Part shown: positions 9,721 to 34,751 of the stretch, one piece after another
Numbering within the stretch: the stretch's first letter is position 1
How the letters are laid out: each line of letters starts with the position of its first letter
Virus record (IMG/VR): IMGVR_UViG_3300037010_001702
Coordinates: 175,442 to 239,441 of that record
Reading direction: 5' to 3' (one strand)
DNA length: 64,000 nt
Position numbers and translations under genes: made by a program
The notes under the pieces: model-generated
Databases searched by the model: none
What the model saw: only the letters and a program-made list of their open reading frames with translations
What the model was told of the DNA's origin: nothing

Positions 9721-10779
9721 ATGAAATGTATTCTGCGAATAACCGATGAAGTATGGTGCCAGATATCTGGTATAATGCCTGGGCATGTAGAGACATTAGT
9801 AAAAGCATTTTCTGTTCACCCAGAAGGTTATTTTTTTATGCCTGCCTTCAAGCTTGGGAGATGGAACGGATATATCCAATTTTATTCTCCAACAGGTAAG
9901 ACCTATGTCCGTCTATTAGATCAGGTTATCCCTTACTTAGAGAAGTGGGGATATGACATTGAGCTGATAGATAATCGAAAGTACTTTGAACCTCCTGTAG
10001 TTGGCGGTAAGCTTTTGACTATTGACCCTGCGGGCATTGCTCTCACTGCTTCTGGGACTAACATAATGGGCGATGATGTTGTCGTTGGCGGAAAGGTATT
10101 CAATCTCCGCCCATACCAATTACAGTGTGTTCAGATTGCTGTAGAGAATGGAAGTGGTTTCATTATCGCAGGAACTGGTGCAGGCAAAACCTCCATCACA
10201 GGTGCTCTCTCCTACTACTATGCCAATGCCGGCTATAAAGTAATCACGATTGTTCCATCCGGTGATCTTGTAGACCAAACAGCTGAGTGGTATGAACTCC
10301 TAGGTCTAGATGTAGGCACCTATTCTGGTACAGAGAAGGACCTTGACCACATGCACATCGTTGCAACGTGGCAGGCAGTACAGTATAATCCTACAATCAT
10401 GCATGACTTTCAATGTCTGATTTGGGATGAGTGTTTTTGTGGTGAGACTCCTGTATTGATGTCTGACATGACGGAAAAGAAAATAAAAGACGTTCGGGTC
10501 GGTGATTATGTTTTATCAATGGACGCAAACGGAAATTTCGAGCCTTGTAAAGTGTTAAAAACTCACATTAATTTACCAAAATCTAAGGTAAAAATGCTTC
10601 GGCTAACGTTTGATAATGGACGTTATTTAGATGTTACCGAAAATCATATTTTCTATCTAAAAGATGGTAGAAAGGTTATGGCAAAAGATTTAACTGAGCG
10701 TGATGATATATGTGAATTCTCCTTAAATAAAATGAAAGCTCATGGAGATAAAGTGAATGAAGAAGAAAATCATAAATGA
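9721..10779 (+). CDS. uvsW: UvsW SF2 helicase N-extein fused to split intein N-half (Cys1 at 10432)
   Basis: LRPYQ Q-motif, Walker A AGTGAGKT, then LIWDE|CFCGETPVLMSD (intein block A) and VTENHIFY (block B). Confidence 0.88.
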   Translation: MKCILRITDEVWCQISGIMPGHVETLVKAFSVHPEGYFFMPAFKLGRWNGYIQFYSPTGKTYVRLLDQVIPYLEKWGYDIELIDNRKYFEPPVVGGKLLTIDPAGIALTASGTNIMGDDVVVGGKVFNLRPYQLQCVQIAVENGSGFIIAGTGAGKTSITGALSYYYANAGYKVITIVPSGDLVDQTAEWYELLGLDVGTYSGTEKDLDHMHIVATWQAVQYNPTIMHDFQCLIWDECFCGETPVLMSDMTEKKIKDVRVGDYVLSMDANGNFEPCKVLKTHINLPKSKVKMLRLTFDNGRYLDVTENHIFYLKDGRKVMAKDLTERDDICEFSLNKMKAHGDKVNEEENHK

Positions 10780-11674
10780 TTTACTAGGAGATGAATTTTT
10801 AATAGATATTAAGTTTTTACCTAGAACCGGATCAGTCAGATTGCCTTTTGATTCAGCTGTATTTTCATGTGGTCGCAAGCTTAATAAAAAAGAGTTTGGT
10901 AAATTTTATAGACTATTAATGCAAGGTCATCTTGAAGAAGCTAGGACTTTTGTAGCAGCTCCACAAGAATTTGAAAAATTAAACAAACAACGAAGGCAGA
11001 TTGCTGCTTCTAAAGGTGGTAGGGCTGCCATGTTAGATCCGAAAAATTATGTTTGTAATAAAAATGGTACGCATTGGAATAGAGGGACAGTTGGATTAGT
11101 TAAGGCATGGAACAAAGGATTAACTAAAAATACTGATGTTCGATGCAAAAACATCTCTATCGCTAAAATGGGAGCAAAAAACCCAATGTATGGTAGACCA
11201 GTATCAGCTTTAACGCGTGAAAAGTTATCATTAAAAGCAAAGCAAAATATTGAATCAGGTAAATGGACCCCTAATACGTTTAATTCTAGAACAAGAAAGC
11301 AACTTAAATTTAGAGATAAACTTTTCAGAAGTAGCTGGGAGGCTCTTTTTTATCAAGCATTTCCACAAGCAGAATACGAAAAGATTAGAATACCGTATTT
11401 TACTGATAAGCATCACGTTTACATTACCGATTTTAAAGTTGGTAATGTAATTTATGAAATAAAACCTGAGAAGTACGTAAAATTAAAACAACCCATTCTT
11501 GATATAGTAGCACGCTGGTGTGTTAGCAATGGATTTGAATTTGTTATATTAACTGAATTTTCTTTAACAGAACTAATACCAAAACACACTGTTAATTTTA
11601 GTGAATTTGATGAAAATACTGAAAAACTATTAAGAGGATTATATGCATCTGTTGAAAAAAGAAGAAATAGATAA
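10757..11674 (+). mobile_element. Free-standing homing endonuclease (PD-(D/E)XK/TnsA-like with NUMOD-like repeats) inside fractured uvsW
   Basis: AT-rich ORF between intein halves; WNKGLTK, KMGAKNPMYG DNA-binding repeats; FRSSWE...YITDF...IYEIKP nuclease motif. Confidence 0.75.
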
Positions 11675-12500
11675 GCCAGAAAAAGTTTATGATTTAACTG
11701 TTGATAAACACCACAACTATATTGTTAATGGTGCTGTTGTTTCGAATTGTCACGGTATCAAAGCTACTGTTGCGCAGAAACTTGTCAATGATAATGGTAA
11801 GCACATTGCATTCCGCTTTGGCGTAACAGGAACATTCCCTAAACCAGAGTCTGAAAAGCTTTCTCTTATTACTTCAATTGGGCCTATCCTCAAAGAGATT
11901 CCTGCTGCGTGGTTAATTGACCATGGTTATCTTGCTAAGGTTCAGATTCAGCCTGTTGAATTGAATGAGAGTTATATCGATGAAGACTTTCCTGACTATG
12001 CTGCTGAGAAATCCTTCTTAGCTAAGAGCACTAATCGAATGGAGATCATTGCTGATTTGATCATCTCTCAATGTGCAGCGCATGGCAATACTCTTGTCCT
12101 GGTTAACTCTATTCCATTTGGTGAAAAGTTAGCTAAGCTGATTAAGGGTGCTGTCTTTCTTTATGGCGAATCACCAAAAGACTTGCGCCGCGAACATTAT
12201 GATATGTTTGAAGAGAATGATGATATAATAGTAATAGCCTCAGCAGGTATTGCTTCAACAGGCCTCTCGATTGACCGTATTTTCTGTATGATGTTTGTAG
12301 ATGCAGGTAAATCCTTCATCAAAGCTATTCAATCAGTAGGGCGCGGTCTTCGTATTGGACATGACAAAGATTCTGTTATGGTTGTCGATGTTCACTCTAA
12401 ACTAAAATGGGCAGTGAGGCACTTTAAGGAACGAGTGAAGCACTACAAAGAAGCTGGATACCCAATAAACAAGAAACAAACTTTGAAAGTAAAAGGTTAA
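11643..12500 (+). CDS. uvsW: Split intein C-half (35 aa) fused to UvsW C-extein
   Basis: VYDLTVDKHHNYIVNGAVVSN|CHG (intein blocks F/G); helicase motifs GVTGT, STGLSI, IQSVGRGLR; GAGGA RBS. Confidence 0.88.
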   Translation: MHLLKKEEIDKPEKVYDLTVDKHHNYIVNGAVVSNCHGIKATVAQKLVNDNGKHIAFRFGVTGTFPKPESEKLSLITSIGPILKEIPAAWLIDHGYLAKVQIQPVELNESYIDEDFPDYAAEKSFLAKSTNRMEIIADLIISQCAAHGNTLVLVNSIPFGEKLAKLIKGAVFLYGESPKDLRREHYDMFEENDDIIVIASAGIASTGLSIDRIFCMMFVDAGKSFIKAIQSVGRGLRIGHDKDSVMVVDVHSKLKWAVRHFKERVKHYKEAGYPINKKQTLKVKG

Positions 12501-12599
12501 ACTATAACTTTGCAGCATCAAATTCTAAATGCACTTTTTAGTGGTGAGTTTTGTTATCTCTGCAGTATTGCGCCAAGTTTGTTATAGTGAATGATTTCC

Positions 12600-12955
12600 C
12601 AGATATCTTATGAGTAAGAGCAAATGTCTGTGAATTTCTATCTGCTATTTTTGACGTTCACTAACGTTAGCCCATCTGTTTGCACTTGATGATTTCATCT
12701 TAGCGACTATTTCTGGTCTTAGCATTGCTTCTTTAGTTACGTTTTGGAGCAAATATGATATAATAGACATATGGCTCGAATCAATTAATGATTTACAGAA
12801 TTTTGAACATGTTGATTGTATGGACAAATTTCTAAGTGCTGAATTTAAATGAGATTCTGCTCGTGAATTCTCCCCTTATAAACATAGAATGGTTTATTAG
12901 TTACCGGGTTCACGTATTGATAAACATAAAACATAAAACATAAAACATAAAACAT
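12600..12955 (-). pseudogene. Decayed GIY-YIG homing endonuclease remnant
   Basis: Minus strand reads MFYVYQYVNPVTNKPFYVYKG then a stop; further NUMOD-like fragments (MLRPEIVAKMKSS) in other frames. Confidence 0.6.
12921..12955. repeat. Heptamer tandem repeat (AAAACAT)x4 + TAAACAT
   Basis: Seen directly; on the minus strand this is ATGTTTT, the start-codon region of the remnant. Confidence 0.9.
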
Positions 12956-12980
12956 TTTAATACCCCTTCCCAATATGATA

Positions 12981-12993
12981 GGGGGGGGGGGGG
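12981..12993. repeat. G13 homopolymer
   Basis: 13 consecutive G; abuts a minus-strand TATAAATA at 12994-13001. Confidence 0.9.
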
Positions 12994-13013
12994 TATTTAT
13001 AGGAGAAACTACT

Positions 13014-13532
13014 TTGCAGATATTACCCGAATACAATAAGCCCTATTTGATAGACTCTTTAACAGCTCCCGTAGTTGTGAAGCATAATTGGATCTTCAAT
13101 GCAGCTCTAACAGATTTTATGTTGGCGCCTATTACCTATTTGGAAGAAACGACTGGCGCTGTCATTAAAGTTCGAATCAACAACAGCGAGTTCTGGGTTC
13201 CAGCTACGTGGAACATCCTCGTTACTGAACGTGAGACATACCAAATCGATACCGTCGCTATCAAGGCCTGTGCTTCCACCGAACACCTGGCGTTTAGTTT
13301 TTCTCCTGATGAAATGAAGCTGCGCACCCTCGAGGTAATGGTCATTGATTACGCTGACTCCATGGCGCTAGTTCACCCGATGATCAACAAGGGCACTGCA
13401 CTCGTTCATCCTGTAGGACCTACCCCTATCCTTAACAATGGTAAGCCAATCCAGCTTTCGGTGGTAATAGGTCCTCACGATCTTTACAAACACTTAGCGA
13501 ACAAGGTGATTGGCGACATCTTCTCATATTAA
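13014..13532 (+). CDS. Hypothetical protein downstream of uvsW
   Basis: AGGAG RBS then TTG start at 13014; the upstream in-frame ATG would run through the poly-G and is unlikely. Confidence 0.65.
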   Translation: MQILPEYNKPYLIDSLTAPVVVKHNWIFNAALTDFMLAPITYLEETTGAVIKVRINNSEFWVPATWNILVTERETYQIDTVAIKACASTEHLAFSFSPDEMKLRTLEVMVIDYADSMALVHPMINKGTALVHPVGPTPILNNGKPIQLSVVIGPHDLYKHLANKVIGDIFSY

Positions 13533-13550
13533 CCTGTTTAAGATGAGTTA

Positions 13551-13610
13551 GTAAAGTCCGCCATAAATATTCTATCAGATAATGATAGGAGTTTTTATGG
13601 CGGACTTTAC
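13551..13610 (+). promoter_or_regulatory. Late promoter inside a 17-bp hairpin masking the endolysin start
   Basis: GTAAAGTCCGCCATAAA (13551-67) is the exact reverse complement of TTTATGGCGGACTTTAC (13594-610); CATAAATA at 13562-69; AGGAG at 13587-91. Confidence 0.8.
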
Positions 13611-14178
13611 AGATGATTTCCTTCTAGCGTTTAACCACGCTATGAAGTATGAGGTAGGTGGATTTTGGAACCCAAACGATCCTGATGTGCAAGCAGGTAC
13701 TATTGGGTCACAAGACTTGAATCGTAAGGTTGGTTATACGAACGATCCAGTTGATCCAGGCGGTGAGACAAAATTCGGTGTCGCTAAGAGTGGCAACCCT
13801 GATGTCGATATCGCAGCCCTTGATTTGAACGGCGCGATGGACATCTACTCTAACAGATACTGGACCGCGGGTTCCTGCGATAAGCTGCCTGGAGCCATTG
13901 CCATCATTCACTTTGATGGTTGTGTCAATCATGGAGTTGGCCGCGCTGTTAAGTTTCTTCAATCTGCCATTGATGCTACACCTGACGGGCAAATTGGACC
14001 TAGAACTCTAGCAGCAATTGCTGGTGCAGACCAAGCGACCGTAATAAATTCAATCGCTCAACAACGTACCGCATTCTACAACTCCATTGTAGCTGCAAAG
14101 CCAGCACAAGCTAGATTCTTAAACGGCTGGTTAGCACGCATCAATGATGTGTCAGCCTTCGCTCTTTCCAAGATTTAA
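13597..14178 (+). CDS. Endolysin, glycoside hydrolase family 108 with peptidoglycan-binding domain
   Basis: DPGGETKFGV catalytic motif, DGCVNHG, DGQIGPRT, RFLNGWLARI. Confidence 0.85.
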   Translation: MADFTDDFLLAFNHAMKYEVGGFWNPNDPDVQAGTIGSQDLNRKVGYTNDPVDPGGETKFGVAKSGNPDVDIAALDLNGAMDIYSNRYWTAGSCDKLPGAIAIIHFDGCVNHGVGRAVKFLQSAIDATPDGQIGPRTLAAIAGADQATVINSIAQQRTAFYNSIVAAKPAQARFLNGWLARINDVSAFALSKI

Positions 14179-14273
14179 AAATTCACGCTTTCTTCTGATT
14201 GCATTGTATCTTAGATTCGTTCTATGATACAATTGCCATTAGAAGATAACAGTTTTCGGAGAAAAACAAAAAT

Positions 14274-15926
14274 ATGTCAAATGAGATTGGTGTCGTTAAA
14301 CGCAGCGGCAAAAAAGTTCCACTCAACATCGAAAAGTGGCAAGCTCAAATCCAAAAAGTATGTGAGGGACTCGATGGTGTATCTCCCTCCATGATTGAAA
14401 TTGCGGCTCAAGCCCACTTCTATGATGGGATGGAGACAAGAGAATTAGATCGCATGGCTCTTCGAGCAATGATCGATTTAATTGACGAAGAAGAACACCC
14501 AGATACCGGTAATATCAACTATCAATATGCTGCTGGAAGACAGCGCGTATCAATGCTTCGTAAAGATGTTTATGGAGATTACGCCCCACCATCCCTTTTG
14601 AGTATCGTAAAGAAGAATGTAGAGTTGGGTCTCTACACCCCAGAGCTGCTCACGTGGTACTCTGAAGATGAATGGAACCAAATGGAGAAATTCATTGACC
14701 ATGACAAAGATGAAATACTACCAATCGCAGCTGTTGAACAGCTTATTGAAAAATACCTGGTTCAAGATCGCTCAAAGAGCAACTCGGTTGTTGAGACTCC
14801 ACAAGTCCGCTACATCGTCGCAGCAGCTACTGCCTTCCATGCAGAGACCAAGGACAGAATGCGCTGGGTTAAGGACTTCTACAACTCTAGTTCAGACGGA
14901 CTATTCACTCTTGCTACACCAGTCCTTGCCGGGCTTGGAACAAAAACTAAGCAATTCAGTTCATGTGTGCTTATCAAGTCTGACGACACCCTCAAATCAA
15001 TCTTTGCAAGTGGGCAAGTCATGGCCGACTATGCTGCTAAACGTGCGGGAATCGGCCTCGATGTTGGCCGCCTTAGACCATTAGGTGCGCCCATTAGAGG
15101 AGGAGAAGTTAAGCACACTGGATACATTCCATTCCTCAAGAAATGGTTCGGAGACCTTCGTTCGTGCTCTCAAGGTGGAATACGGAATGCGTCTGCCACC
15201 ATCAACTTCCCAATTTGGCATTATCAATTTGACGATCTTATCGTCCTAAAGAATAACCAAGGTACTGACGAGACACGCGTTCGTCACATGGACTACTGCG
15301 TAGTCATGAACAAGTTCTTCTGGAAGCGCTTCAAGCAGCAGGGCGTAATCACCTTCTTCGATCCAAATGAAGTGCCTGATCTTTACGAAGCCTTCTATGC
15401 TGACTCAGTTCGCTTTGAAGAGCTCTACGAGATGTACGAAGCGCGCACTGATCTTCGCAAGAAGGTAGAGCCAGCAGAAGTCGTCATTAAGGATTGGTTG
15501 ATCAAAGAACGTGGTGACACTGGTCGTTACTACATTCTGAACATCGACAACGTTGCTAATCAAGGTCCTCTTGATCCATCTGTTCACCCAATCTACCAAA
15601 CAAATCTCTGTGTATCGCCAGACACTATTATTAATTGCACGGTTGACGGTACTAAAATGGATATTTCTATATTAGAGTTGACCAGCCTATTCAGCATGAA
15701 TAAAAAAATAAAGGCACTTAGTAAAAATGTAGCTACTGGTGAAATATCGTACGAGTCAGTTACAGCTGCTGCTAAAACTGATATCAATCGCAAACTACTG
15801 AAAATTACTGACTCTGTTACTGGAAAATCGATTAAAGTTACAGCAAATCATAAAGTATGGACTAAAAATCGAGGCTGGGTAGAAGCTGGTTCTTTAAAGT
15901 CAGACGATTTACTAGACCTGATTTAA
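14274..15926 (+). CDS. nrdA: Class Ia ribonucleotide reductase alpha N-extein fused to split intein N-half (Cys1 at 15609)
   Basis: ATP cone (VVKRSG), ETPQ, ATPVLAG, FSSCVL, CSQGGIRNASA; YQTNL|CVSPDT intein start; VTANHKVW block B. Confidence 0.92.
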   Translation: MSNEIGVVKRSGKKVPLNIEKWQAQIQKVCEGLDGVSPSMIEIAAQAHFYDGMETRELDRMALRAMIDLIDEEEHPDTGNINYQYAAGRQRVSMLRKDVYGDYAPPSLLSIVKKNVELGLYTPELLTWYSEDEWNQMEKFIDHDKDEILPIAAVEQLIEKYLVQDRSKSNSVVETPQVRYIVAAATAFHAETKDRMRWVKDFYNSSSDGLFTLATPVLAGLGTKTKQFSSCVLIKSDDTLKSIFASGQVMADYAAKRAGIGLDVGRLRPLGAPIRGGEVKHTGYIPFLKKWFGDLRSCSQGGIRNASATINFPIWHYQFDDLIVLKNNQGTDETRVRHMDYCVVMNKFFWKRFKQQGVITFFDPNEVPDLYEAFYADSVRFEELYEMYEARTDLRKKVEPAEVVIKDWLIKERGDTGRYYILNIDNVANQGPLDPSVHPIYQTNLCVSPDTIINCTVDGTKMDISILELTSLFSMNKKIKALSKNVATGEISYESVTAAAKTDINRKLLKITDSVTGKSIKVTANHKVWTKNRGWVEAGSLKSDDLLDLI

Positions 15927-15927
15927 T

Positions 15928-15979
15928 GTGTGCCCCGTTATTTCTCTATAAATAATAGTACAGAGATTATGGGGCACAC
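15928..15979 (+). promoter_or_regulatory. Late promoter inside a hairpin masking the endonuclease RBS
   Basis: GTGTGCCCC (15928-36) pairs with GGGGCACAC (15971-79); TATAAATA at 15947-54 in between; ATG at 15981. Confidence 0.75.
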
Positions 15980-15980
15980 T

Positions 15981-16736
15981 ATGAAAGATGTAATGTACAG
16001 AGTTTATTGTTGGACAAGTAAAAGTTCAGGCAAATCTTATATTGGATACACTGGAGATGGTGTTTATTTTAGATGGTCGAAACATGTTTTGAGGGCAACA
16101 ACTGGTGGAAAGACATATTTTGATAAGGCAATAAGAAAACATGGTGTAGATGATTGGGTATGCAAGATCATTTTTGATACTCATTTGGAGCATGAAGCTA
16201 AACTAATTGAAATTAAAATGATTAAAGAACTGGATACTTTAGCTCCTAATGGATATAATTCAACACCTGGTGGCAGTGGTGGCAATACATGGTTCGGCGA
16301 AAATGTTGCTGCAAGAAAAGAAGTGTTGAGCAAGAGTAACTCTGGCAGAAATAATCCAAGGGCAGCCACAGTAATAGATGATGAGCTACTTGTTGCAGCA
16401 ATTGCTCTGTGGAAAGATAATGGATGCAATTGGATTCAGTCAAAATGGTTTGATTTGTGTAAGTTGAAAAAGTGGCCAACGCACCTGGTTAAATGGAGAT
16501 TTTCTAAATTTGGTGGGGGCCTCAGGGGATTGAAAGCTGCAATGCTAGATAAACTAAAGAGTGATGGATATGATATTTCAGAAATTAAATATTCTGCAAC
16601 ACCTGCCCACCGCAGCAAAGTAAGCAAACAGAATTTAGGTAAAATTTGGGTAACAGATACTGCAGCTAACAAATCTTATTTAGCTTTTGCTACTGAATTA
16701 AAATTAGACACTATTATTAAAGGCAGAAAATGTTAA
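15981..16736 (+). mobile_element. Free-standing GIY-YIG homing endonuclease inside fractured nrdA
   Basis: VYCW...SYIGYT, RWSKH, E...IKELDTLAPNGYNSTPGG; AT-rich. Confidence 0.85.
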
Positions 16737-17818
16737 TTATAGAAGAATTAGATGATGTAAGTGATGTTTTTGATATCACTGTTGAAAACACTCACACTTT
16801 TTATGGAGATGGAATATTGGTTCATAACTGCACAGAAATCATGCAGCATACCCGTCCATTCCAAACAATTGAAGATCCGGAGGGCCGCATTGCTCTATGC
16901 ACGCTTGGCTCCATTAATTGGGGTTCATTCCGCAATCCAGAAGACATGAAGCGTCCAGCTGTAGTTCTTCACAGAGCTCTTCACAACCTTCTTCAGTACC
17001 AAGACTTCCTGTCAGTGCATTCTGAACTTCACAACAAGGAATTTGAACCTCTTGGTATCGGCATCACCAACCTTGCATACTGGCAAGCTAAGCGTAAGCT
17101 GAAGTATGGTGAAGCAGATCAACTAGCTGAAGTAAAGCGCTGGATGGAACACCAATCCTTCTACTTGATCGAAGCTTCTGTCAATCTTGCTAAAGAGAAA
17201 GGTCCTTGCCTTGCATCTGCTCAGACACGTTATGGTCAAGGTATCTTTCCTTGGGAGCTTCGTGCTGAAGGTGTCAATGAACTAACTGACTTCACACCTT
17301 CTGAAGATTTGGATTGGGAAGGTCTTCGTGCTAAGATGAAACAGTATGGCATTCGTAATGCTACAAACATGGCAATTGCTCCAGTTGAATCTTCTTCTGT
17401 TGTTATCAATTCAACAAATGGTTTCAATCTTGTTAAACAGCTGATCATCATTAAGGAATCCAAAGCTGGTGCATTCGCGCAAGTTGTTCCTGAGTATCGT
17501 AAGCTGAAGAATCATTACCAGCTGCTTTGGGATCAAAAGGATTGCATCGAGTACATCAAGACTGCTGCAGTTTTGCAAGTCTATGTTGATCAAGGTATCT
17601 CTACTGATACATTTTACTCTGGAAAGTATTTCCCAGAAGGAAAGATTCCTGCTACATTGATTGCTAAGAACCTTATGCTAGGAGCGAGATGGGGGATAAA
17701 ATCTTGGTATTACGATTTGAGAGATAAGCAAGGATCAAAGGAGATGCTTCAAGAAAGTTTTGTTCCTGTTCAAGCTGAACCCGAAGTTGAAGAATATTGC
17801 GAAAGCTGCATACTGTGA
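16730..17818 (+). CDS. nrdA: Split intein C-half (33 aa) fused to NrdA C-extein
   Basis: VFDITVENTHTFYGDGILVHN|CTEI; ALCTLGSIN, LGIGITN, IAPVESSS, DQGIST, C-terminal CESCIL. Confidence 0.92.
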   Translation: MLIIEELDDVSDVFDITVENTHTFYGDGILVHNCTEIMQHTRPFQTIEDPEGRIALCTLGSINWGSFRNPEDMKRPAVVLHRALHNLLQYQDFLSVHSELHNKEFEPLGIGITNLAYWQAKRKLKYGEADQLAEVKRWMEHQSFYLIEASVNLAKEKGPCLASAQTRYGQGIFPWELRAEGVNELTDFTPSEDLDWEGLRAKMKQYGIRNATNMAIAPVESSSVVINSTNGFNLVKQLIIIKESKAGAFAQVVPEYRKLKNHYQLLWDQKDCIEYIKTAAVLQVYVDQGISTDTFYSGKYFPEGKIPATLIAKNLMLGARWGIKSWYYDLRDKQGSKEMLQESFVPVQAEPEVEEYCESCIL

Positions 17819-18390
17819 AATTAGATGAAATAGTTTGGCCAAATACTATAAATGATGTGGGATTTGAAAATCTACTACCATCATTAGAAGAAAATAACAT
17901 GGAGATTTTGCGACTAACAACACGAATTGTTATCGGTAGATCACAAAATAAATACACACTTATAGTTGATTCCAAAATAGTCGGCTTTTTATCATTAGGC
18001 CCAACGGAAGTTATTGATGATAAGCATTATCTTCCAGTAAAAATGCTTTTTGTTATTGAACAATTTAGAAAAACGCGAGCATCTGGTCTATTCATTCTTG
18101 GATTGTCTAAGCTATTGAAATACCCACTAATAATCGGTAATGAAGCAGATAAAGGAGGTTCATTGTCAAAGGATGGTGGGATGCTTCTTGCATCCCTTGC
18201 TGAAAAAAGCAATTTCAGTGTTAGCATACTGAATTTCAAAACAAACAAGATTACAAAATTTTCAAATAGTGATATCGGGGCAAATGACCCCGATATAACA
18301 TTAATAATTGATGGACAAAAATTTCCATTTATTAGTGAAGCACACATAGATATGGGCACATTCGAATATCTGTGGAATGAAGATTTATAA
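17815..18390 (+). CDS. GNAT-like fold protein with MKLDEI leader (GTG start overlapping the nrdA stop)
   Basis: IVGFLSL...LFVIEQFRKT...SLSKDG resembles the motif order of paralogues at 29945 and 33500. Confidence 0.5.
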   Translation: MKLDEIVWPNTINDVGFENLLPSLEENNMEILRLTTRIVIGRSQNKYTLIVDSKIVGFLSLGPTEVIDDKHYLPVKMLFVIEQFRKTRASGLFILGLSKLLKYPLIIGNEADKGGSLSKDGGMLLASLAEKSNFSVSILNFKTNKITKFSNSDIGANDPDITLIIDGQKFPFISEAHIDMGTFEYLWNEDL

Positions 18391-18399
18391 AGGAAGCAC

Positions 18400-19485
18400 A
18401 TGATTAGAGATTTTAGTATCGTTCCAAATTACTCCAAGCGTCAGATGTTCTTGGATAAAGCTGGCCCAGTAACCACTCAGCGTTTTGATGACTACGCGTA
18501 TCCAAAGATTGCAAAGTTTGAAGAGACACAGCGTGGAGCCTTTTGGGTTCCTGAGGAAATCACCCTGACGAAGGACAAGATTGACTTCAAGGAAGCTAGC
18601 AAGGCTGTTCGCCACATCTTTACAGCCAACTTGTTGCGTCAGACGACTCTCGATTCGATTCAGGGCAGAGCTCCAGCGCAAATCTTTACGCCGGTATGCT
18701 CTATTCCCGAGCTCGAACTCCTCACTCTTACATGGACGTGGTTCGAAGCCATTCACTCTCGTGCTTACTCGCACATCATTCGGAACATCTACAACGTTCC
18801 TAAGGATGAGTTCAACAAGATTCATGACAATGCTGAGATTGTCGCGATGACTTCCTCCATTGGGAAGTACTATGATGCTCTTCACCATCTCAACTGCCTG
18901 GTTGAGACTGGAAAGGAAGTAAGTGAGCACGATTACATCAAGGCAATCTACTTGGCACTTATCGCTTCTTATGGACTTGAGGCTATTCGATTCACTGTTT
19001 CATTTGCTACAAGCTTGGGAATGGTTGAAAATAAGATCTTTATCGGTAATGGGAATGAGATTTCGCTTATTCTTTCAGATGAAATGCTTCACGTGGATTG
19101 GACTGCCTACATAATAAATACAGTAGTCAAGGATGACCCTCGCTTCGCAGCTGTTGCAGCTGAGTGCAAGAAGGAAGCGTACGACATCCTCACGATGGTT
19201 ATCGAGGAAGAGAAGTCATGGGCTAAGTATCTGTTTAAGGAAGGTTCCGTTATCGGTCTTAACGAACGAACAATGATTAACTTCGTTGATTGGACAGCTC
19301 AGTACCGTCTGAAGGACATCGGCATTAAATATGATGCGGGGGTCAAGTCCACTCCAATTCCTTGGTTCAATAAACATCTGAACACAAATAAGAAACAAAC
19401 AGCTCTTCAAGAAAATGAGAGCGTGGCTTACGTTATTGGCTCAATGACCAACAGCGTAAATTATGACGAACTTCCTGATTTGTAA
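18400..19485 (+). CDS. nrdB: Ribonucleotide reductase class Ia beta subunit
   Basis: FWVPEEI, DSIQGRAP, EAIHSRAYSH (radical Tyr retained), LEAIRF, DEMLH, QENE C-terminus. Confidence 0.93.
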   Translation: MIRDFSIVPNYSKRQMFLDKAGPVTTQRFDDYAYPKIAKFEETQRGAFWVPEEITLTKDKIDFKEASKAVRHIFTANLLRQTTLDSIQGRAPAQIFTPVCSIPELELLTLTWTWFEAIHSRAYSHIIRNIYNVPKDEFNKIHDNAEIVAMTSSIGKYYDALHHLNCLVETGKEVSEHDYIKAIYLALIASYGLEAIRFTVSFATSLGMVENKIFIGNGNEISLILSDEMLHVDWTAYIINTVVKDDPRFAAVAAECKKEAYDILTMVIEEEKSWAKYLFKEGSVIGLNERTMINFVDWTAQYRLKDIGIKYDAGVKSTPIPWFNKHLNTNKKQTALQENESVAYVIGSMTNSVNYDELPDL

Positions 19486-19495
19486 AGGATTAAAA

Positions 19496-19723
19496 ATGGC
19501 TAATGAACAATTGAATGCGGCACTCACTGAAGCTGTAGTAGGTAATGCTCTTGGAAAGAAGTGGTATGAATCAAAGACTTTCTGGACTAACATCGTAGCT
19601 GGTCTAACGATGCTTGCTCAGTTGAAGTATGGATTCCTTATCCCAGCGGAATACCAAATGCTTGGTATGTCCTTTATCAACATCGCGCTTAGAAAAATCA
19701 CAAAGGATCCAGTGGTCTGGTAA
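19496..19723 (+). CDS. Small membrane protein, holin-like
   Basis: KKWYESKTFWTN, two hydrophobic segments, NIALRKITKDPV. Confidence 0.5.
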   Translation: MANEQLNAALTEAVVGNALGKKWYESKTFWTNIVAGLTMLAQLKYGFLIPAEYQMLGMSFINIALRKITKDPVVW

Positions 19724-19731
19724 ATCGAAAA

Positions 19732-19983
19732 ATGTCTGACTATACAATATACTCAAAACCCGGTTGCACATACTGCGAACAAGCCAAAAGCCTTCTAGCT
19801 TCTAAGAATCTTTCCTACACGGAGTTGATTCTTGACGTTGGTCAGGTTAAGGACCCAGCAAAGCAGTACTACACAGTTGCTCAGCTCAAGGAGAAAGTTC
19901 CTGAAGCGAGAACGGTTCCTCAGATTTTCAAGGGAACTACGCTCATCGGTGGTTACGACTCCCTAAAGCAACGCTTAGCATAA
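19732..19983 (+). CDS. Glutaredoxin (NrdC/NrdH-like)
   Basis: YSKPGCTYC, TVPQIF, IGGYD. Confidence 0.92.
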   Translation: MSDYTIYSKPGCTYCEQAKSLLASKNLSYTELILDVGQVKDPAKQYYTVAQLKEKVPEARTVPQIFKGTTLIGGYDSLKQRLA

Positions 19984-19997
19984 AGCAATTCGATTGT

Positions 19998-20039
19998 TGT
20001 TCCCGGATAAATAACTTATTACTAAGTTATCCGGGAACA
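19998..20039 (+). promoter_or_regulatory. Late promoter inside a 13-bp hairpin upstream of the large tail gene
   Basis: TGTTCCCGGATAA (19998-20010) pairs with TTATCCGGGAACA (20027-39); GATAAATA at 20006-13; ATG at 20045. Confidence 0.75.
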
Positions 20040-20044
20040 CTCTC

Positions 20045-23000
20045 ATGCGAATTTCATACAGACAAGGTTTAGTTTCTGCTCAACCTGATTTCTTGCAAGT
20101 TGGTCAAGCTGACTCTAGATACGTCGATCTAGTTGTTAGCCCTACACCAGTTCTTGCAGCGCTTGCCAGCCATGATAAGGACTACCTAATTGGTGAGTAC
20201 AAGACGGTTCAGAACGCGTGGGGGCCTTTTGAGGGAACCCAAACTCAGTACCTCTATTGGGAAATTAACGGTCTTGGTAAGCTTGTTCGTGGCTCTACAA
20301 CGATCTCCCCAATCACTTCTCCTGCTGAACCTATCAGACTTGTGGGACAGATGTGGTGGGACACAGTAAATAACTGCTACTTTGTTTATGATGGTGAGCG
20401 CTGGGTAGAGGCAAAGCGCGTTCTCGCTGGAACGCTCCGCTCTGGTGGAATCCTTTCTCCTGTTGGATTCATTTCGCAGGTAGGATTGAACACTGCAGCT
20501 GATGCCGGCTTTATTCTTACTGACAGCTTTGGTAATGTCTTCAGGGACAACCAGGGCAACCTTCTTACTACTGACACGCCACTTACAAGCGCTGATACTG
20601 GTTCTCTTGTTAAGCTTGATGGTGCGCAGATCCTGGTGCAAGCAAATGAGAACATCCCTAAGTTCTCCTTGATCTACCTTATTGGTGGTAGAGCTGCTCT
20701 TGCTTCAGGTATTCCTCCAGACAATATCGCGAAAGCTCCAGTAGCTATTTGCACGACTGACGCATATCAGAATGACGTCATTACCATCACTCCAGCTGGC
20801 AAGACAGTTTCATTTGACCAATGGAGCTGGGATATCTCTACTTGGGGTAAGACTGTCTATTGCGGTCCTCACGGTGAAGTCACCCTTACTCGCCCAGAGT
20901 CTCCAAAGAACGTTCGCGTAGGTACGATCATCTCCGCTCAAAGTGTGTTGCTTAACTTTGACTGGGAAACAGATGCAGCCGTAGCTGCATCTGGAATTTC
21001 AGGCATTGCAGTTCAGGCTCCACTTGTAGTATCAGGTCAGCTTAGCACGCCGGTAATCTCAATGCCACGTGCTACAGAGGTACTTGACGGCTTCATGAAC
21101 AGCTCCGACTTCGCCCGTATCCCAGCTCTTGAAACTGTAGTCGCTCTCAAAGCCGACATTACTCACACCCAGCCCATCTCTTCAGTATTAGGCCTACAAA
21201 CCTCGCTAGATGGAAAGGCGCCGTTGATTCACGCTCACGCTATCTCTGACGTGAATGGTCTTCAGCTCGCTCTTGACAACAAGGCAAACACAGTTCACAC
21301 TCACGCTGTAGCTGACATCACTGACATTCAGCCAATCTTCATCAACATCAACACTGCACTTAACTCTAAGATGCCAATGATTGTCGGTGGAACAGTTGGC
21401 AACTTTACAACGATAACAGCTTCAGGTACAGTCGCTGACAGCTACCTTAATGCAGCAAGCTTCGCGCTAGCTTCTCACACCCACGCGATGGTTGATATCA
21501 TTGAACTTTCAACTGCTCTTAACGGGAAAGCAGCTCTTGTTCACACTCACATCATCTCTGACGTAGGTGGGCTTCAGCTAGCTCTTGATGATAAGGCGAA
21601 TCTAATTCACTCTCACGTCATCGACGATGTGGCTGGATTGGCTGACGCCCTTGCTGGTAAAGCACCTACTATCCACGTTCACGCTATTGCTGACGTAGCA
21701 GGTCTTCAGTCAACTCTTGACGGTAAAGCAAACACCATTCACTCTCACAGTATTGCTGAAGTAACTGGTCTTCAAACGGCTCTTGATGGTAAGTCAGCCA
21801 TTGGACACATCCATGGAATCAATGAAGTAACTGGTCTTCAAATCGTGTTGGACAGTAAGGCTGACGTTGTTCATGCCCACGTCATTGCTGATATCACTGA
21901 TCTCCAGCCAGCGCTTGACTTGAAGGCTAACGTTAATCACACTCAGCTTGCATCAACGATCACTGACTTCGTTAATGCTTCATACATCGCGGCTCGCGCA
22001 GCTCTTGTGCCTGGTCCAAATGTCACTATCACGCCAAATGATGTTAACATGACGCTGACTATCAGCTCAAATGGTGGTGCAGCTACGTGGCCATTTGTAA
22101 GTCCTAATGGTGCCATCGTTGAAGAGGCAAGCGTAGTTCCAGATGCTGGTGGACTTGTTCTTCGTGGCAAGACAAACACTTCAGTCATGATGGCAGTTGG
22201 CGGTAACAATGCTAATAGCCCAGCTCCTTCAGCCTCTATTCTTCTTTCAGATGTTGGTGAAATTAAGATCACTGGAATGGCAGGGGCAGCTGGACAAGTA
22301 CTTACATCTGGTGGTGCGGGGGCTGCAGCGCACTGGGCAGATTCCATTGGAACAATTTCCCTTACACAAGATGAAATAGCTTATGGTACTGTCGGTAATG
22401 TTGCTACATCTTCAGCAAACCTTGGCTTCAAGGATTCAGATGGATCATTCACACTCAACGTTAACGCATCCTCAAATCCAACAACCACACCTGGTCAAGT
22501 GCGAATTGGTGCCCCGTTCGCGCCTGATTACCAAACTCAGATCAATCAAAACATTGCTGGTGATATCACATTGCTAACTAACAATCTGTCAAGATTGAGA
22601 ATTAGCTCGTACGGCGAATTCTTCTTCAACGAGGTTACTGATCCAGCTGTGGCCACGAATACTACTGACACAAATGTGTACACACGCAATGGTTATGTTG
22701 CAGCGCAACCATATTTTGAGAGCGGCGGTAATCTTGCTGTTATGGCTGGAAAGTCAGATGATAATTCACCTATCGCTATTGGTGGTGCTATTGGCCTATA
22801 TGCTGGTGGCAACTTCAATTACATGTCAGATGGTGCTCGTATTCAAGCCTATGGTGGTGGTACTGGGTCTGTTGATGCACCCGATGATGGTGGTGGAATC
22901 TTCCTTCACTCTGGTTCTGTTGGTTGGTATGACACTACCCCGTATAGTCAGCTTCACAATCTAAACAGAACGTCTGGTACCATCGTAGTATCCACTGGCG

Positions 23001-34196: not shown

Positions 34197-34751
34197 ATGG
34201 TCCCGTATGTATATCAAATAACACTAATACATACTGGTGAATTTTATATAGGCGTCAATTCGCAAAAACGCTCACCCAGAAAATTTGTGGAAAACATATT
34301 TTACATCATCTAAAAAATTAAGGAGTTAATTAAAATACATGGTAAAGATGTTTGGCGAATTGATTTTATTGAAGAATTTAATTCTCCTAAAGAAGCTCAA
34401 CTTAGGGAAAGTGAATTACAACTTTCTTGTCCTCGAGATAAATTACTTAATATTAGATTAGGAAATACTCTATTTAACCGGTCCGGACCATTATCTCAAG
34501 AAACAAAAAATAAAATATCAGCGTCACGAAAAGGTGGGACTGGGTGGACTAAAGGAAAACCACTATCTGAAGAAACTAAAAACAAAATTTCTAAATCAAA
34601 GATGGGTGCCCCAACTAATATATCAGGTGAAGCTAAAAAACAGATGAAAGAAAATTTGTCAAAGGCGAAAACAGGAATAAAACTTGGTCCTCAAAATCCA
34701 GAATGGATACAGAAAAGAATTAAGTCACGAATGGTATCCGGTTGCGCTTAA
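34197..34751 (+). pseudogene. Frameshifted GIY-YIG homing endonuclease with NUMOD3 repeats
   Basis: PYVYQI...FYIG, then YFTSSK and SQETKNKIS / SEETKNKISKS in shifted frames. Confidence 0.75.

Follow-up and report, generated by a model that had tools for sequence, protein, structure and literature searches.

A fractured phage nrdA with a predicted split intein before the thiyl-radical cysteine and a GIY-YIG endonuclease gene between its halves

Introduction

How could a bacteriophage obtain a working ribonucleotide reductase (RNR) when the gene for its large subunit, nrdA, is broken in two inside the active-site loop and another gene occupies the gap? This question is raised by a locus at positions 14274-17818 of a 64,000-nucleotide stretch of DNA (hereafter the window), which forms the final 64 kb of the 239,441-bp IMG/VR virus record IMGVR_UViG_3300037010_001702 (G000:C1:175442-239441), a record estimated by CheckV to be ~67% complete. 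We argue, with a probability of about 0.85, that the locus is a fractured phage nrdA in which a free-standing gene for a GIY-YIG homing endonuclease has divided a mini-intein, placed before the thiyl-radical cysteine, between two genes.

Loci of this kind have been described before. Dassa et al. (2009; PMC2677866) found seven fractured NrdA loci (NrdA-1 to NrdA-7) in the Global Ocean Sampling (GOS) metagenomes, with a split intein inserted immediately before the thiyl radical site, the position at which RNR inteins are most often found, and a GIY-YIG or Vsr-like endonuclease gene between the halves. The fractured-gene loci of that study carry 5' hairpins with TATAAATA and overlaps of 6-69 bp with the C-intein (IntC), and one of them had lost its endonuclease (PMC2677866). 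According to the supplement of Pinto et al. (2020; PMC7090010), an allelic GOS intein, NrdA-2 (SNL/CNE), splices to ~75-98% in cis and also in trans in vitro.

Results

Two open reading frames (ORFs) on the + strand of the window together encode an RNR large subunit. The first (N-ORF; 14274-15926, 550 amino acids) comprises NrdA residues 1-445, that is, an N-extein (14274-15608) with the ATP-cone, the all-alpha domain and the first half of the barrel, which ends in YQTNL; it continues into a 105-residue N-intein (IntN; 15609-15926 including a TAA stop), whose Cys1 is residue 446, at nt 15609. The second (C-ORF; 16730-17818, 362 amino acids) opens with a 33-residue IntC (16730-16828) that ends GILVHN at nt 16828, and the +1 Cys at 16829 begins the rest of NrdA, a C-extein of 329 residues (16829-17818) starting C-T-E-I. 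An earlier reading of the letters of this DNA (the sequence-only reading) had drawn the same boundaries, and the ORF list and the sequence agree with them exactly.

Pfam profiles identified the ATP-cone, the RNR all-alpha domain, positions 1-213 of the 523 of the barrel profile and the N part of Intein_splicing in the N-ORF, and Intein_splicing positions 126-155 followed by barrel positions 212-522 in the C-ORF. The barrel pieces of the two ORFs meet at 212/213 of the profile, so that one position marks the cut, a fit that is not expected by chance. On alignment with phmmer, the N-extein matched residues 3-441 of Escherichia coli R1 (E 5e-115), with YQTNL on RQSNL438, and the C-extein matched residues 437-748 (E 4e-58), with C-T-E on C439-L440-E441. 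Because the first cysteine of the C-extein aligns to C439, the +1 nucleophile of the intein is the equivalent of the thiyl-radical cysteine, which bears out the sequence-only reading. The break thus leaves the N437 equivalent on the N polypeptide and the C439 equivalent on the other.

The N-extein also holds the equivalent of C225, and the C-extein those of E441 and C462, the YY pair and the C-terminal CxxC tail; in the translations these motifs read QFSSC, NL/CTE, ALCTL, WYY and CESC. With the ATP-cone, 10-stranded barrel, Cys triad, Asn and Glu, Tyr-Tyr radical path and C-terminal Cys pair all present, we assign the large subunit to the class Ia ribonucleotide reductases, as NrdA. Neither half contains stops or frameshifts and every catalytic residue is in place, in keeping with the proposal that this is a complete, apparently intact example. 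The fractured nrdA is the sole RNR large-subunit gene in the 239-kb record, and NrdD was not found in the ~67% of the genome that the record is estimated to cover. As no other large-subunit gene is present in the record, the phage-encoded reductase depends on reconstitution from two halves. The further claim that dNTP (deoxynucleoside triphosphate) supply depends on trans-splicing holds only for the phage-encoded enzyme and is too strong as it was stated, because the record is incomplete and a host reductase would normally be available too.

We then turned to alleles without an interruption. A 775-aa NrdA (P0008) from the 90% cluster of the C-ORF, about 90% identical to the NrdA of the window, reads HPIYQTNLCTEIMQHTR across the insertion site. 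Its junction, YQTNLCTEI, is a natural counterpart of the spliced product YQTNL-CTEI that had been predicted. The exteins were aligned to P0008 one at a time. The N-extein matched residues 1-445 without a gap (445/445 positions, 90.3% identical) and the C-extein matched residues 446-775 (329/330 positions, 87.5% identical), so that removal of the intein leaves the exteins colinear with an uninterrupted homologue. Protein identity to P0008 dips near the junction, but also elsewhere along the exteins. The P0008 contig is syntenic with the window (gp32, RecA, UvsY, an uninterrupted UvsW, GH108, nrdA, nrdB and grx), and a further relative, L013, supplies the DNA of an empty nrdA site. The interruption is the exception, because NrdA is contiguous in all of the best 80 of 425 viral stretches related to P0008.

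The segments that interrupt NrdA have the features of a split intein. IntN, with block A (C-V-S-P-D-T) and block B (V-T-A-N-H), matched positions 10-92 of the Pfam Intein_splicing profile, and among solved structures it comes closest to the NrdJ-1 split intein (8ubs; E 2e-9, with about 40% of 83 residues identical). IntC carries blocks F and G (DITVE...GILVHN). When a word search was confined to IntN, five other NrdA-N+IntN proteins were recovered, 58-69% identical, and IntC is 76-85% identical among relatives. In an alignment, Cys1 did not vary among six IntN sequences, nor did the block A DT or the block B T..H, and DITVE, GILVHN and the +1 Cys were invariant in four IntC sequences. The block A Cys, the T-x-x-H of block B and the terminal His-Asn followed by Cys lie on two halves encoded by separate ORFs with their own starts and stops. 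We conclude from these motifs that, in agreement with the sequence-only reading, the locus carries a split intein; it has all of the splicing residues and is of class 1, with a predicted Hint fold. Synonymous sites of the intein are saturated, and dN (the rate of nonsynonymous change) is 0.11-0.37. The ratio of nonsynonymous to synonymous change (dN/dS), which saturation of dS left computable for only a minority of segment pairs, was 0.05-0.11 (0.05-0.09 for IntC).

Pairing of the two halves was assessed by a fold-based binding test with N-ORF residues 436-550 and C-ORF residues 1-45, taking the median of three runs and using three controls. The interface score (ipSAE) was 0.84, and the best control reached 0.01; this mark is reached by 51 of 78 solved complexes and by 2 of 108 mismatched pairs. 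Contact agreement between runs was at least 87%, the confidence of the partners (predicted local distance difference test, pLDDT) was at least 72, and both splice junctions lay in the interface. The predicted complex supports, but does not prove, the pairing of IntN with IntC. As whole fragments, IntN is basic (net charge +3) and IntC acidic (-8).

The gene between the halves (15981-16736, + strand) encodes 251 amino acids; its frame is open from 15930, and ATG 15981 is the likely start. Its product is laid out as an N-terminal catalytic domain of ~100 residues and a C-terminal half, of unassigned fold, that is presumed to bind DNA. The Pfam GIY-YIG profile scored 28.2 bits (cut-off 22.6; 2.3e-6) and the PHROG annotation 'homing endonuclease' matched at 2.4e-19, which upholds the GIY-YIG assignment made earlier. 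The signature Y..YIGYT..R..KH..E..GYN, with the catalytic Tyr, YIG, Arg, His, Glu and Asn, is invariant in 12 homologues. An AlphaFold model (pLDDT 80.6) found its best structural matches in the PDB in the I-TevI catalytic domain (1mk0/1ln0; target template modelling score 0.74-0.75, with a Foldseek E of only 4e-3); a sequence search of the PDB returned nothing meaningful. The C-terminal 150 residues are well folded in the model (pLDDT 84-94) and contain strings resembling the NUMOD3 pattern SG..NP, recognised by eye only.

The start of IntC is embedded in the end of this gene. The ATG of IntC overlaps the endonuclease stop by 7 nt (ATGTTAA), and its Shine-Dalgarno sequence, AAGG at 16719-16722, lies within the last endonuclease codons, where the conserved C-terminal K-G-R-K codons double as an AAGG-type ribosome-binding site. 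The overlap is 7-14 nt among relatives, and 14 nt in two of them, L009 and L011.

Between the IntN stop and the endonuclease start, the RNA is predicted to form a hairpin (15928-15979, + strand) of -28.1 kcal/mol (z -4.83); shuffled sequences gave -12.6 +/- 3.2 kcal/mol and 0 of 200 folded as well. Its 3' arm contains the first in-frame ATG (15969) and a GGGG Shine-Dalgarno sequence (15971-15974), 6 nt before ATG 15981, and its loop contains TATAAATA (15947-15954, + strand), a T4-type late-promoter motif. A transcript begun just 3' of TATAAATA would lack the 5' arm. The equivalent hairpins of L009 (-39 kcal/mol, z -7.2) and L011 (-26.9 kcal/mol, z -7.8) have different stem sequences, with the same TATAAATA in the loop and the Shine-Dalgarno sequence likewise buried. 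The hairpin that masks the ribosome-binding site, as proposed earlier, is therefore confirmed by folding against shuffles and by its retention in two relatives. The window holds five copies of TATAAATA against 2.7 expected, which is no enrichment. Of the 24 copies in the genome, however, 12 fall on the strand of an ORF and 10-110 nt upstream of it, in zones that make up 6.1% of positions (p 3.5e-9), and these sites include positions before two other endonuclease genes. The motif, its enrichment upstream of ORFs and its conservation in the loop thus sustain part of the claim that the gene has its own late promoter; promoter function itself is a motif-level inference. No terminator-like site was found on the + strand between the nrdA halves. 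A scan of 13400-20200 for Sigma-70 promoters and terminators returned fewer sites than shuffles and was uninformative.

In each of the five neighbourhoods that were examined (L009/L010, L011, L093/L094, L095 and L096/L097), a member of this endonuclease family is flanked by the IntN and IntC parts of nrdA. In comparison with L011 and L012, exteins (69-73% identical) and intein (58-82%) have diverged to a similar degree. The comparison with L009 was different: IntN is 67%, IntC 76% and the endonuclease 39% identical, whereas identity is only 29-32% for the NrdA exteins and 25% for NrdB, and ~48% for the backbone genes GH108 and Grx, as with other relatives. This is most simply read as entry of the cassette, at an unchanged site, into another lineage of reductases. 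In L012 the split intein is retained with only a 40-nt spacer, and neither the endonuclease nor the hairpin is present.

Some relatives have more elaborate arrangements. The proteins P0002 and P0005, from other metagenomes, are NrdA middle pieces of ~384 amino acids. Their N end is a long C-intein of another, atypically split intein, which ends in THN and is followed by the Ser of an SQGGIRN motif, and their C end is the IntN of the NrdA split intein; nrdA is thus in three pieces in some relatives, with two split inteins to join them. In L093 (1369-6322) the N-half contains an extra contiguous intein, a 102-aa intein ORF stands apart from a 330-aa C-part, and a NUMOD3 gene precedes nrdB. In L095 (482-4794) the C-half is broken again, into 325 residues, 137 residues of unknown function and 162 residues.

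Downstream of nrdA lie nrdB (18400-19485, + strand; Pfam Ribonuc_red_sm 1.9e-40), which encodes the small radical-generating subunit and partner of spliced NrdA, and a glutaredoxin gene (19732-19983, + strand; Pfam Glutaredoxin 8e-12), whose product is the likely reductant. An ORF of 191-197 residues (17815-18390) separates nrdA-C from nrdB, and its start overlaps the nrdA stop (GTGA). It is missing in a close relative, in which nrdB starts 11 nt after nrdA, and has no match in Pfam or PHROG; a protein atlas points to viral GNAT-like acetyltransferases (0.94), which we regard as a lead only. The same slot holds mobE in T4 and the NUMOD3 gene in L093. The + strand of this region also carries the T4-like replication and recombination genes gp32, UvsX-like RecA and UvsW, and a GH108 endolysin gene is present as well. 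The cultured phages nearest in NrdA are myophages of Xanthomonas, Ralstonia and Stenotrophomonas (55-60% identical), and a near-identity DNA search of phage records gave no match.

The 239-kb record contains four split-intein genes, for a ligase, the large terminase (TerL), UvsW and NrdA. The UvsW-like helicase (9721-12500) is split within motif II as DE/CH, with the N-half and IntN at 9721-10779 and an IntC (...VVSN), followed by C-H-G and Helicase_C, at 11643-12500. A 305-aa endonuclease with NUMOD3 and a TnsA-like PD-(D/E)xK domain lies between them (10757-11674), and no hairpin was found upstream of it. UvsW is uninterrupted in relatives, and a literature search found no paper linking naturally split inteins with UvsW. 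The third fractured gene (C1:70529-72600; L004:1168-3238) encodes an RnlA-like ligase split right after the K-x-D-G adenylation motif, with a +1 Ser. A 345-aa homing-endonuclease-like gene on the opposite strand separates its IntN and IntC, with TATAAATA 35 nt upstream. Neither the UvsW- nor the ligase-associated endonuclease had a sequence match in the PDB. The large terminase gene, immediately upstream of the window (C1:172953-175353; L006:3-2403), is interrupted by an intein that is split atypically: a short IntN of ~36 residues and a long IntC of ~115 residues (...GVISHN/CEF) lie ~460 nt apart with no long ORF between them; TATAAATA occurs within the coding part of IntN. We take this intein to resemble the AceL-TerL type.

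Four more GIY-YIG-like matches were seen in the genome, at C1:135674-135928, C1:26065-26331, C1:102306-102518 (- strand) and about 34203-34421 of the window. The best of these, C1:135674, has TATAAATA 4 nt before its ORF, and the match in the window (C1:209644-209862) holds a TAA stop. Upstream of nrdA, positions 12500-13000 include an unusual stretch of 475 nt that lacks a + strand ORF and contains a tandem repeat, (CATAAAA)x5, at ~12922-12955. ORF 12975-13532 (MIGGGG...) has 13 consecutive G at its very start (12981-12994), a tract that may be prone to slippage or mark a weak point of the assembly.

Discussion

What the sequences show is the anatomy of the locus, its residue equivalences, its colinearity with the uninterrupted allele, and the retention of hairpin and intein in relatives; we infer splicing itself, the timing, and the activity and target of the endonuclease, as follows. 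One message from upstream would carry nrdA-N with IntN, the endonuclease gene, IntC with nrdA-C, the small ORF, nrdB and grx. Both NrdA halves would be translated from their own ribosome-binding sites on this operon message, and that of the endonuclease would be kept locked in the hairpin. Basic IntN and acidic IntC would associate into a Hint fold, and trans-splicing would join YQTNL to CTEI through a peptide bond. The active-site loop, with the equivalents of N437, C439 and E441, would thereby be rebuilt in a normal 774-aa NrdA working with NrdB and glutaredoxin. Late in infection, transcription from TATAAATA in the loop would give RNA without the 5' arm, and the endonuclease would be made. 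It would presumably cut the intein-free nrdA of co-infecting relatives, whose repair would copy the whole cassette in.

The arrangement matches the fractured genes of Dassa et al. (2009; PMC2677866), and the sequence-only reading was correct in treating the architecture as established. As in the GOS loci, a class I nrdA holds a split intein just before the thiyl-radical Cys and a free-standing GIY-YIG gene on the same strand between the halves; the one-strand order, the hairpin with TATAAATA and the overlap of the endonuclease 3' end with the IntC start (7 nt here) are all shared (PMC2677866). L012 resembles the reported locus from which the endonuclease was lost (PMC2677866). Unlike the GOS loci, the NrdA described here is nearest to that of the Xanthomonas, Ralstonia and Stenotrophomonas myophages and not to that of cyanophages, and it lies in a 239-kb phage record, whereas the GOS loci were found in short metagenomic assemblies. 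The junction is TNL/CTE here and SNL/CNE in NrdA-2, an intein that we set apart by its description and not by its sequence. The interface polarity of NrdA-2 is opposite to the acidic IntC and basic IntN seen here (PMC2677866), although our values are net charges of whole fragments. NrdJ-1 (GOS; PDB 8ubs/9omb) is likewise a class 1 split intein with Cys1, His-Asn and Cys+1 in a fractured phage-like reductase gene. In contrast to the present intein, however, it sits in a class II reductase, one residue further C-terminal (PMC2677866), and has a longer IntC.

The endonuclease resembles I-TevI and other phage GIY-YIG homing endonucleases in its N-terminal catalytic fold and catalytic residues, and I-TevI of T4 also has late, hairpin-controlled expression. 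I-TevI is, however, intron-encoded and has a characterised DNA-binding region with a zinc finger and a helix-turn-helix, whereas the C-terminal half of the present protein has no Pfam match, even at E 10. The lack of a recognised DNA-binding domain is one of several observations that weigh against our reading. The 24 genomic copies of TATAAATA are about the number expected by chance, which tells against the late promoter, and no RNA run is among those in which the locus was found. The binding test may owe its pass to memory of solved split inteins; because these are already among the solved structures, the pass shows likeness and not splicing of this copy. The endonuclease is under more relaxed constraint than the intein parts (dN/dS 0.3-0.4 against 0.05-0.11). 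Finally, no joint that skips the cassette was found among the contigs of the four runs that contain the phage, which gives no sign of ongoing homing, although contigs drop rare variants and may have missed empty alleles.

The last two observations are also what would be expected if the split intein still splices but the GIY-YIG gene has lost its homing-endonuclease activity, with the arrangement simply passed on vertically and tolerated. The endonuclease is moreover dispensable, because L012 keeps the split intein without it. This is the alternative that survives best, and we consider it unlikely. The ORF is intact, its catalytic residues are invariant among the homologues and its predicted fold is I-TevI-like. 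The regulatory hairpin and promoter have been maintained through compensating stem changes. Transfer of the cassette at some time is implied by its presence in an RNR lineage only ~30% identical.

A very improbable alternative to splicing comes from Aeromonas phage Aeh1, in which a free-standing endonuclease gene also cuts nrdA (nrdA-a/mobE/nrdA-b; Friedrich et al., 2007; Crona et al., 2010, PMC3045599). As in our reading of the present locus, a late promoter lies inside a hairpin that masks the ribosome-binding site, and the endonuclease 3' end overlaps the downstream half. [quoted passage not shown] By analogy, the intein halves described here could be mere interaction tails holding the NrdA pieces together non-covalently, with the unspliced complex as the active enzyme, and the predicted binding of IntN to IntC fits mere association equally well. 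However, homologues down to 58% identity keep, without variation, residues that only the splicing chemistry requires (C1, Thr and His of block B, and the terminal His-Asn). The break also falls inside a buried active-site loop, between the N437 and C439 equivalents, where an attached Hint domain of 138 residues should, on steric grounds, block the active site. Aeh1, by contrast, has an HNH endonuclease, no intein motifs at its break and non-covalent assembly by short tails, whereas the intein halves of the present locus predict covalent ligation.

Slightly less probable still is the view that the interruption inactivated nrdA and that the phage relies on the host enzyme. T4 tolerates losing the reductase that it encodes. 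Some intein-riddled nrdA genes of phages, for example those of Campylobacter phages, are thought to be degenerating (PMC3653736). The locus studied here argues against this view. It has no stops or frameshifts; the equivalents of C225, N437, C439, E441 and C462 are present, together with the YY pair and the CxxC at the C terminus; nrdB is intact, as is grx; and the exteins, ~90% identical to the uninterrupted allele, give no indication that constraint has been relaxed.

The DNA comes from a viral contig that was assembled from a metagenome, and an assembler could have wrongly joined an intein and endonuclease segment into nrdA. The locus was present without any difference in contigs from four runs of four studies (sediment and microbial-mat metagenomes). 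In one run, X4, a contig spans the N-extein, IntN and endonuclease (15290-16377) and a second, separate contig spans the endonuclease, IntC and C-extein (16394-16914). Because the same sequence recurs in four runs and both junctions are bridged by separate X4 contigs, the nrdA locus is not an assembly artefact. With diverged relatives from other samples sharing the arrangement, a chimera is already refuted, as far as contigs can show.

Conclusions

A fractured nrdA with a split intein and a GIY-YIG gene adds little that is new to biology, the arrangement having been known since 2009; what is added is a complete fractured nrdA in its genomic setting, in a phage lineage of sediments and microbial mats that is far removed from the marine, cyanophage-like sources of the first descriptions. 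The uninterrupted alleles (P0008, L013), the cassette-bearing ones (L009, L011) and the split intein without an endonuclease (L012) form a natural comparator set for homing and splicing. Four new natural split inteins in one phage, one with a 33-residue acidic IntC and one an atypical TerL intein with a short IntN, are candidate orthogonal ligation tools.

A larger interpretation would make the split intein and GIY-YIG gene a currently mobile unit that homes whole between reductase lineages ~30% identical. The four trans-splicing-dependent core genes would then form a genome-wide post-translational layer, possibly one of timing or redox control, that goes beyond tolerated parasitism. We regard this as improbable. 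If it were true, replication, recombination and packaging would all rest on protein trans-splicing, through the RnlA-like ligase, TerL, the UvsW helicase and NrdA. For the family of fractured reductase genes, an intein that is 67-76% identical inside nrdA genes only ~30% identical offers clean comparative evidence of movement of the cassette between gene lineages.

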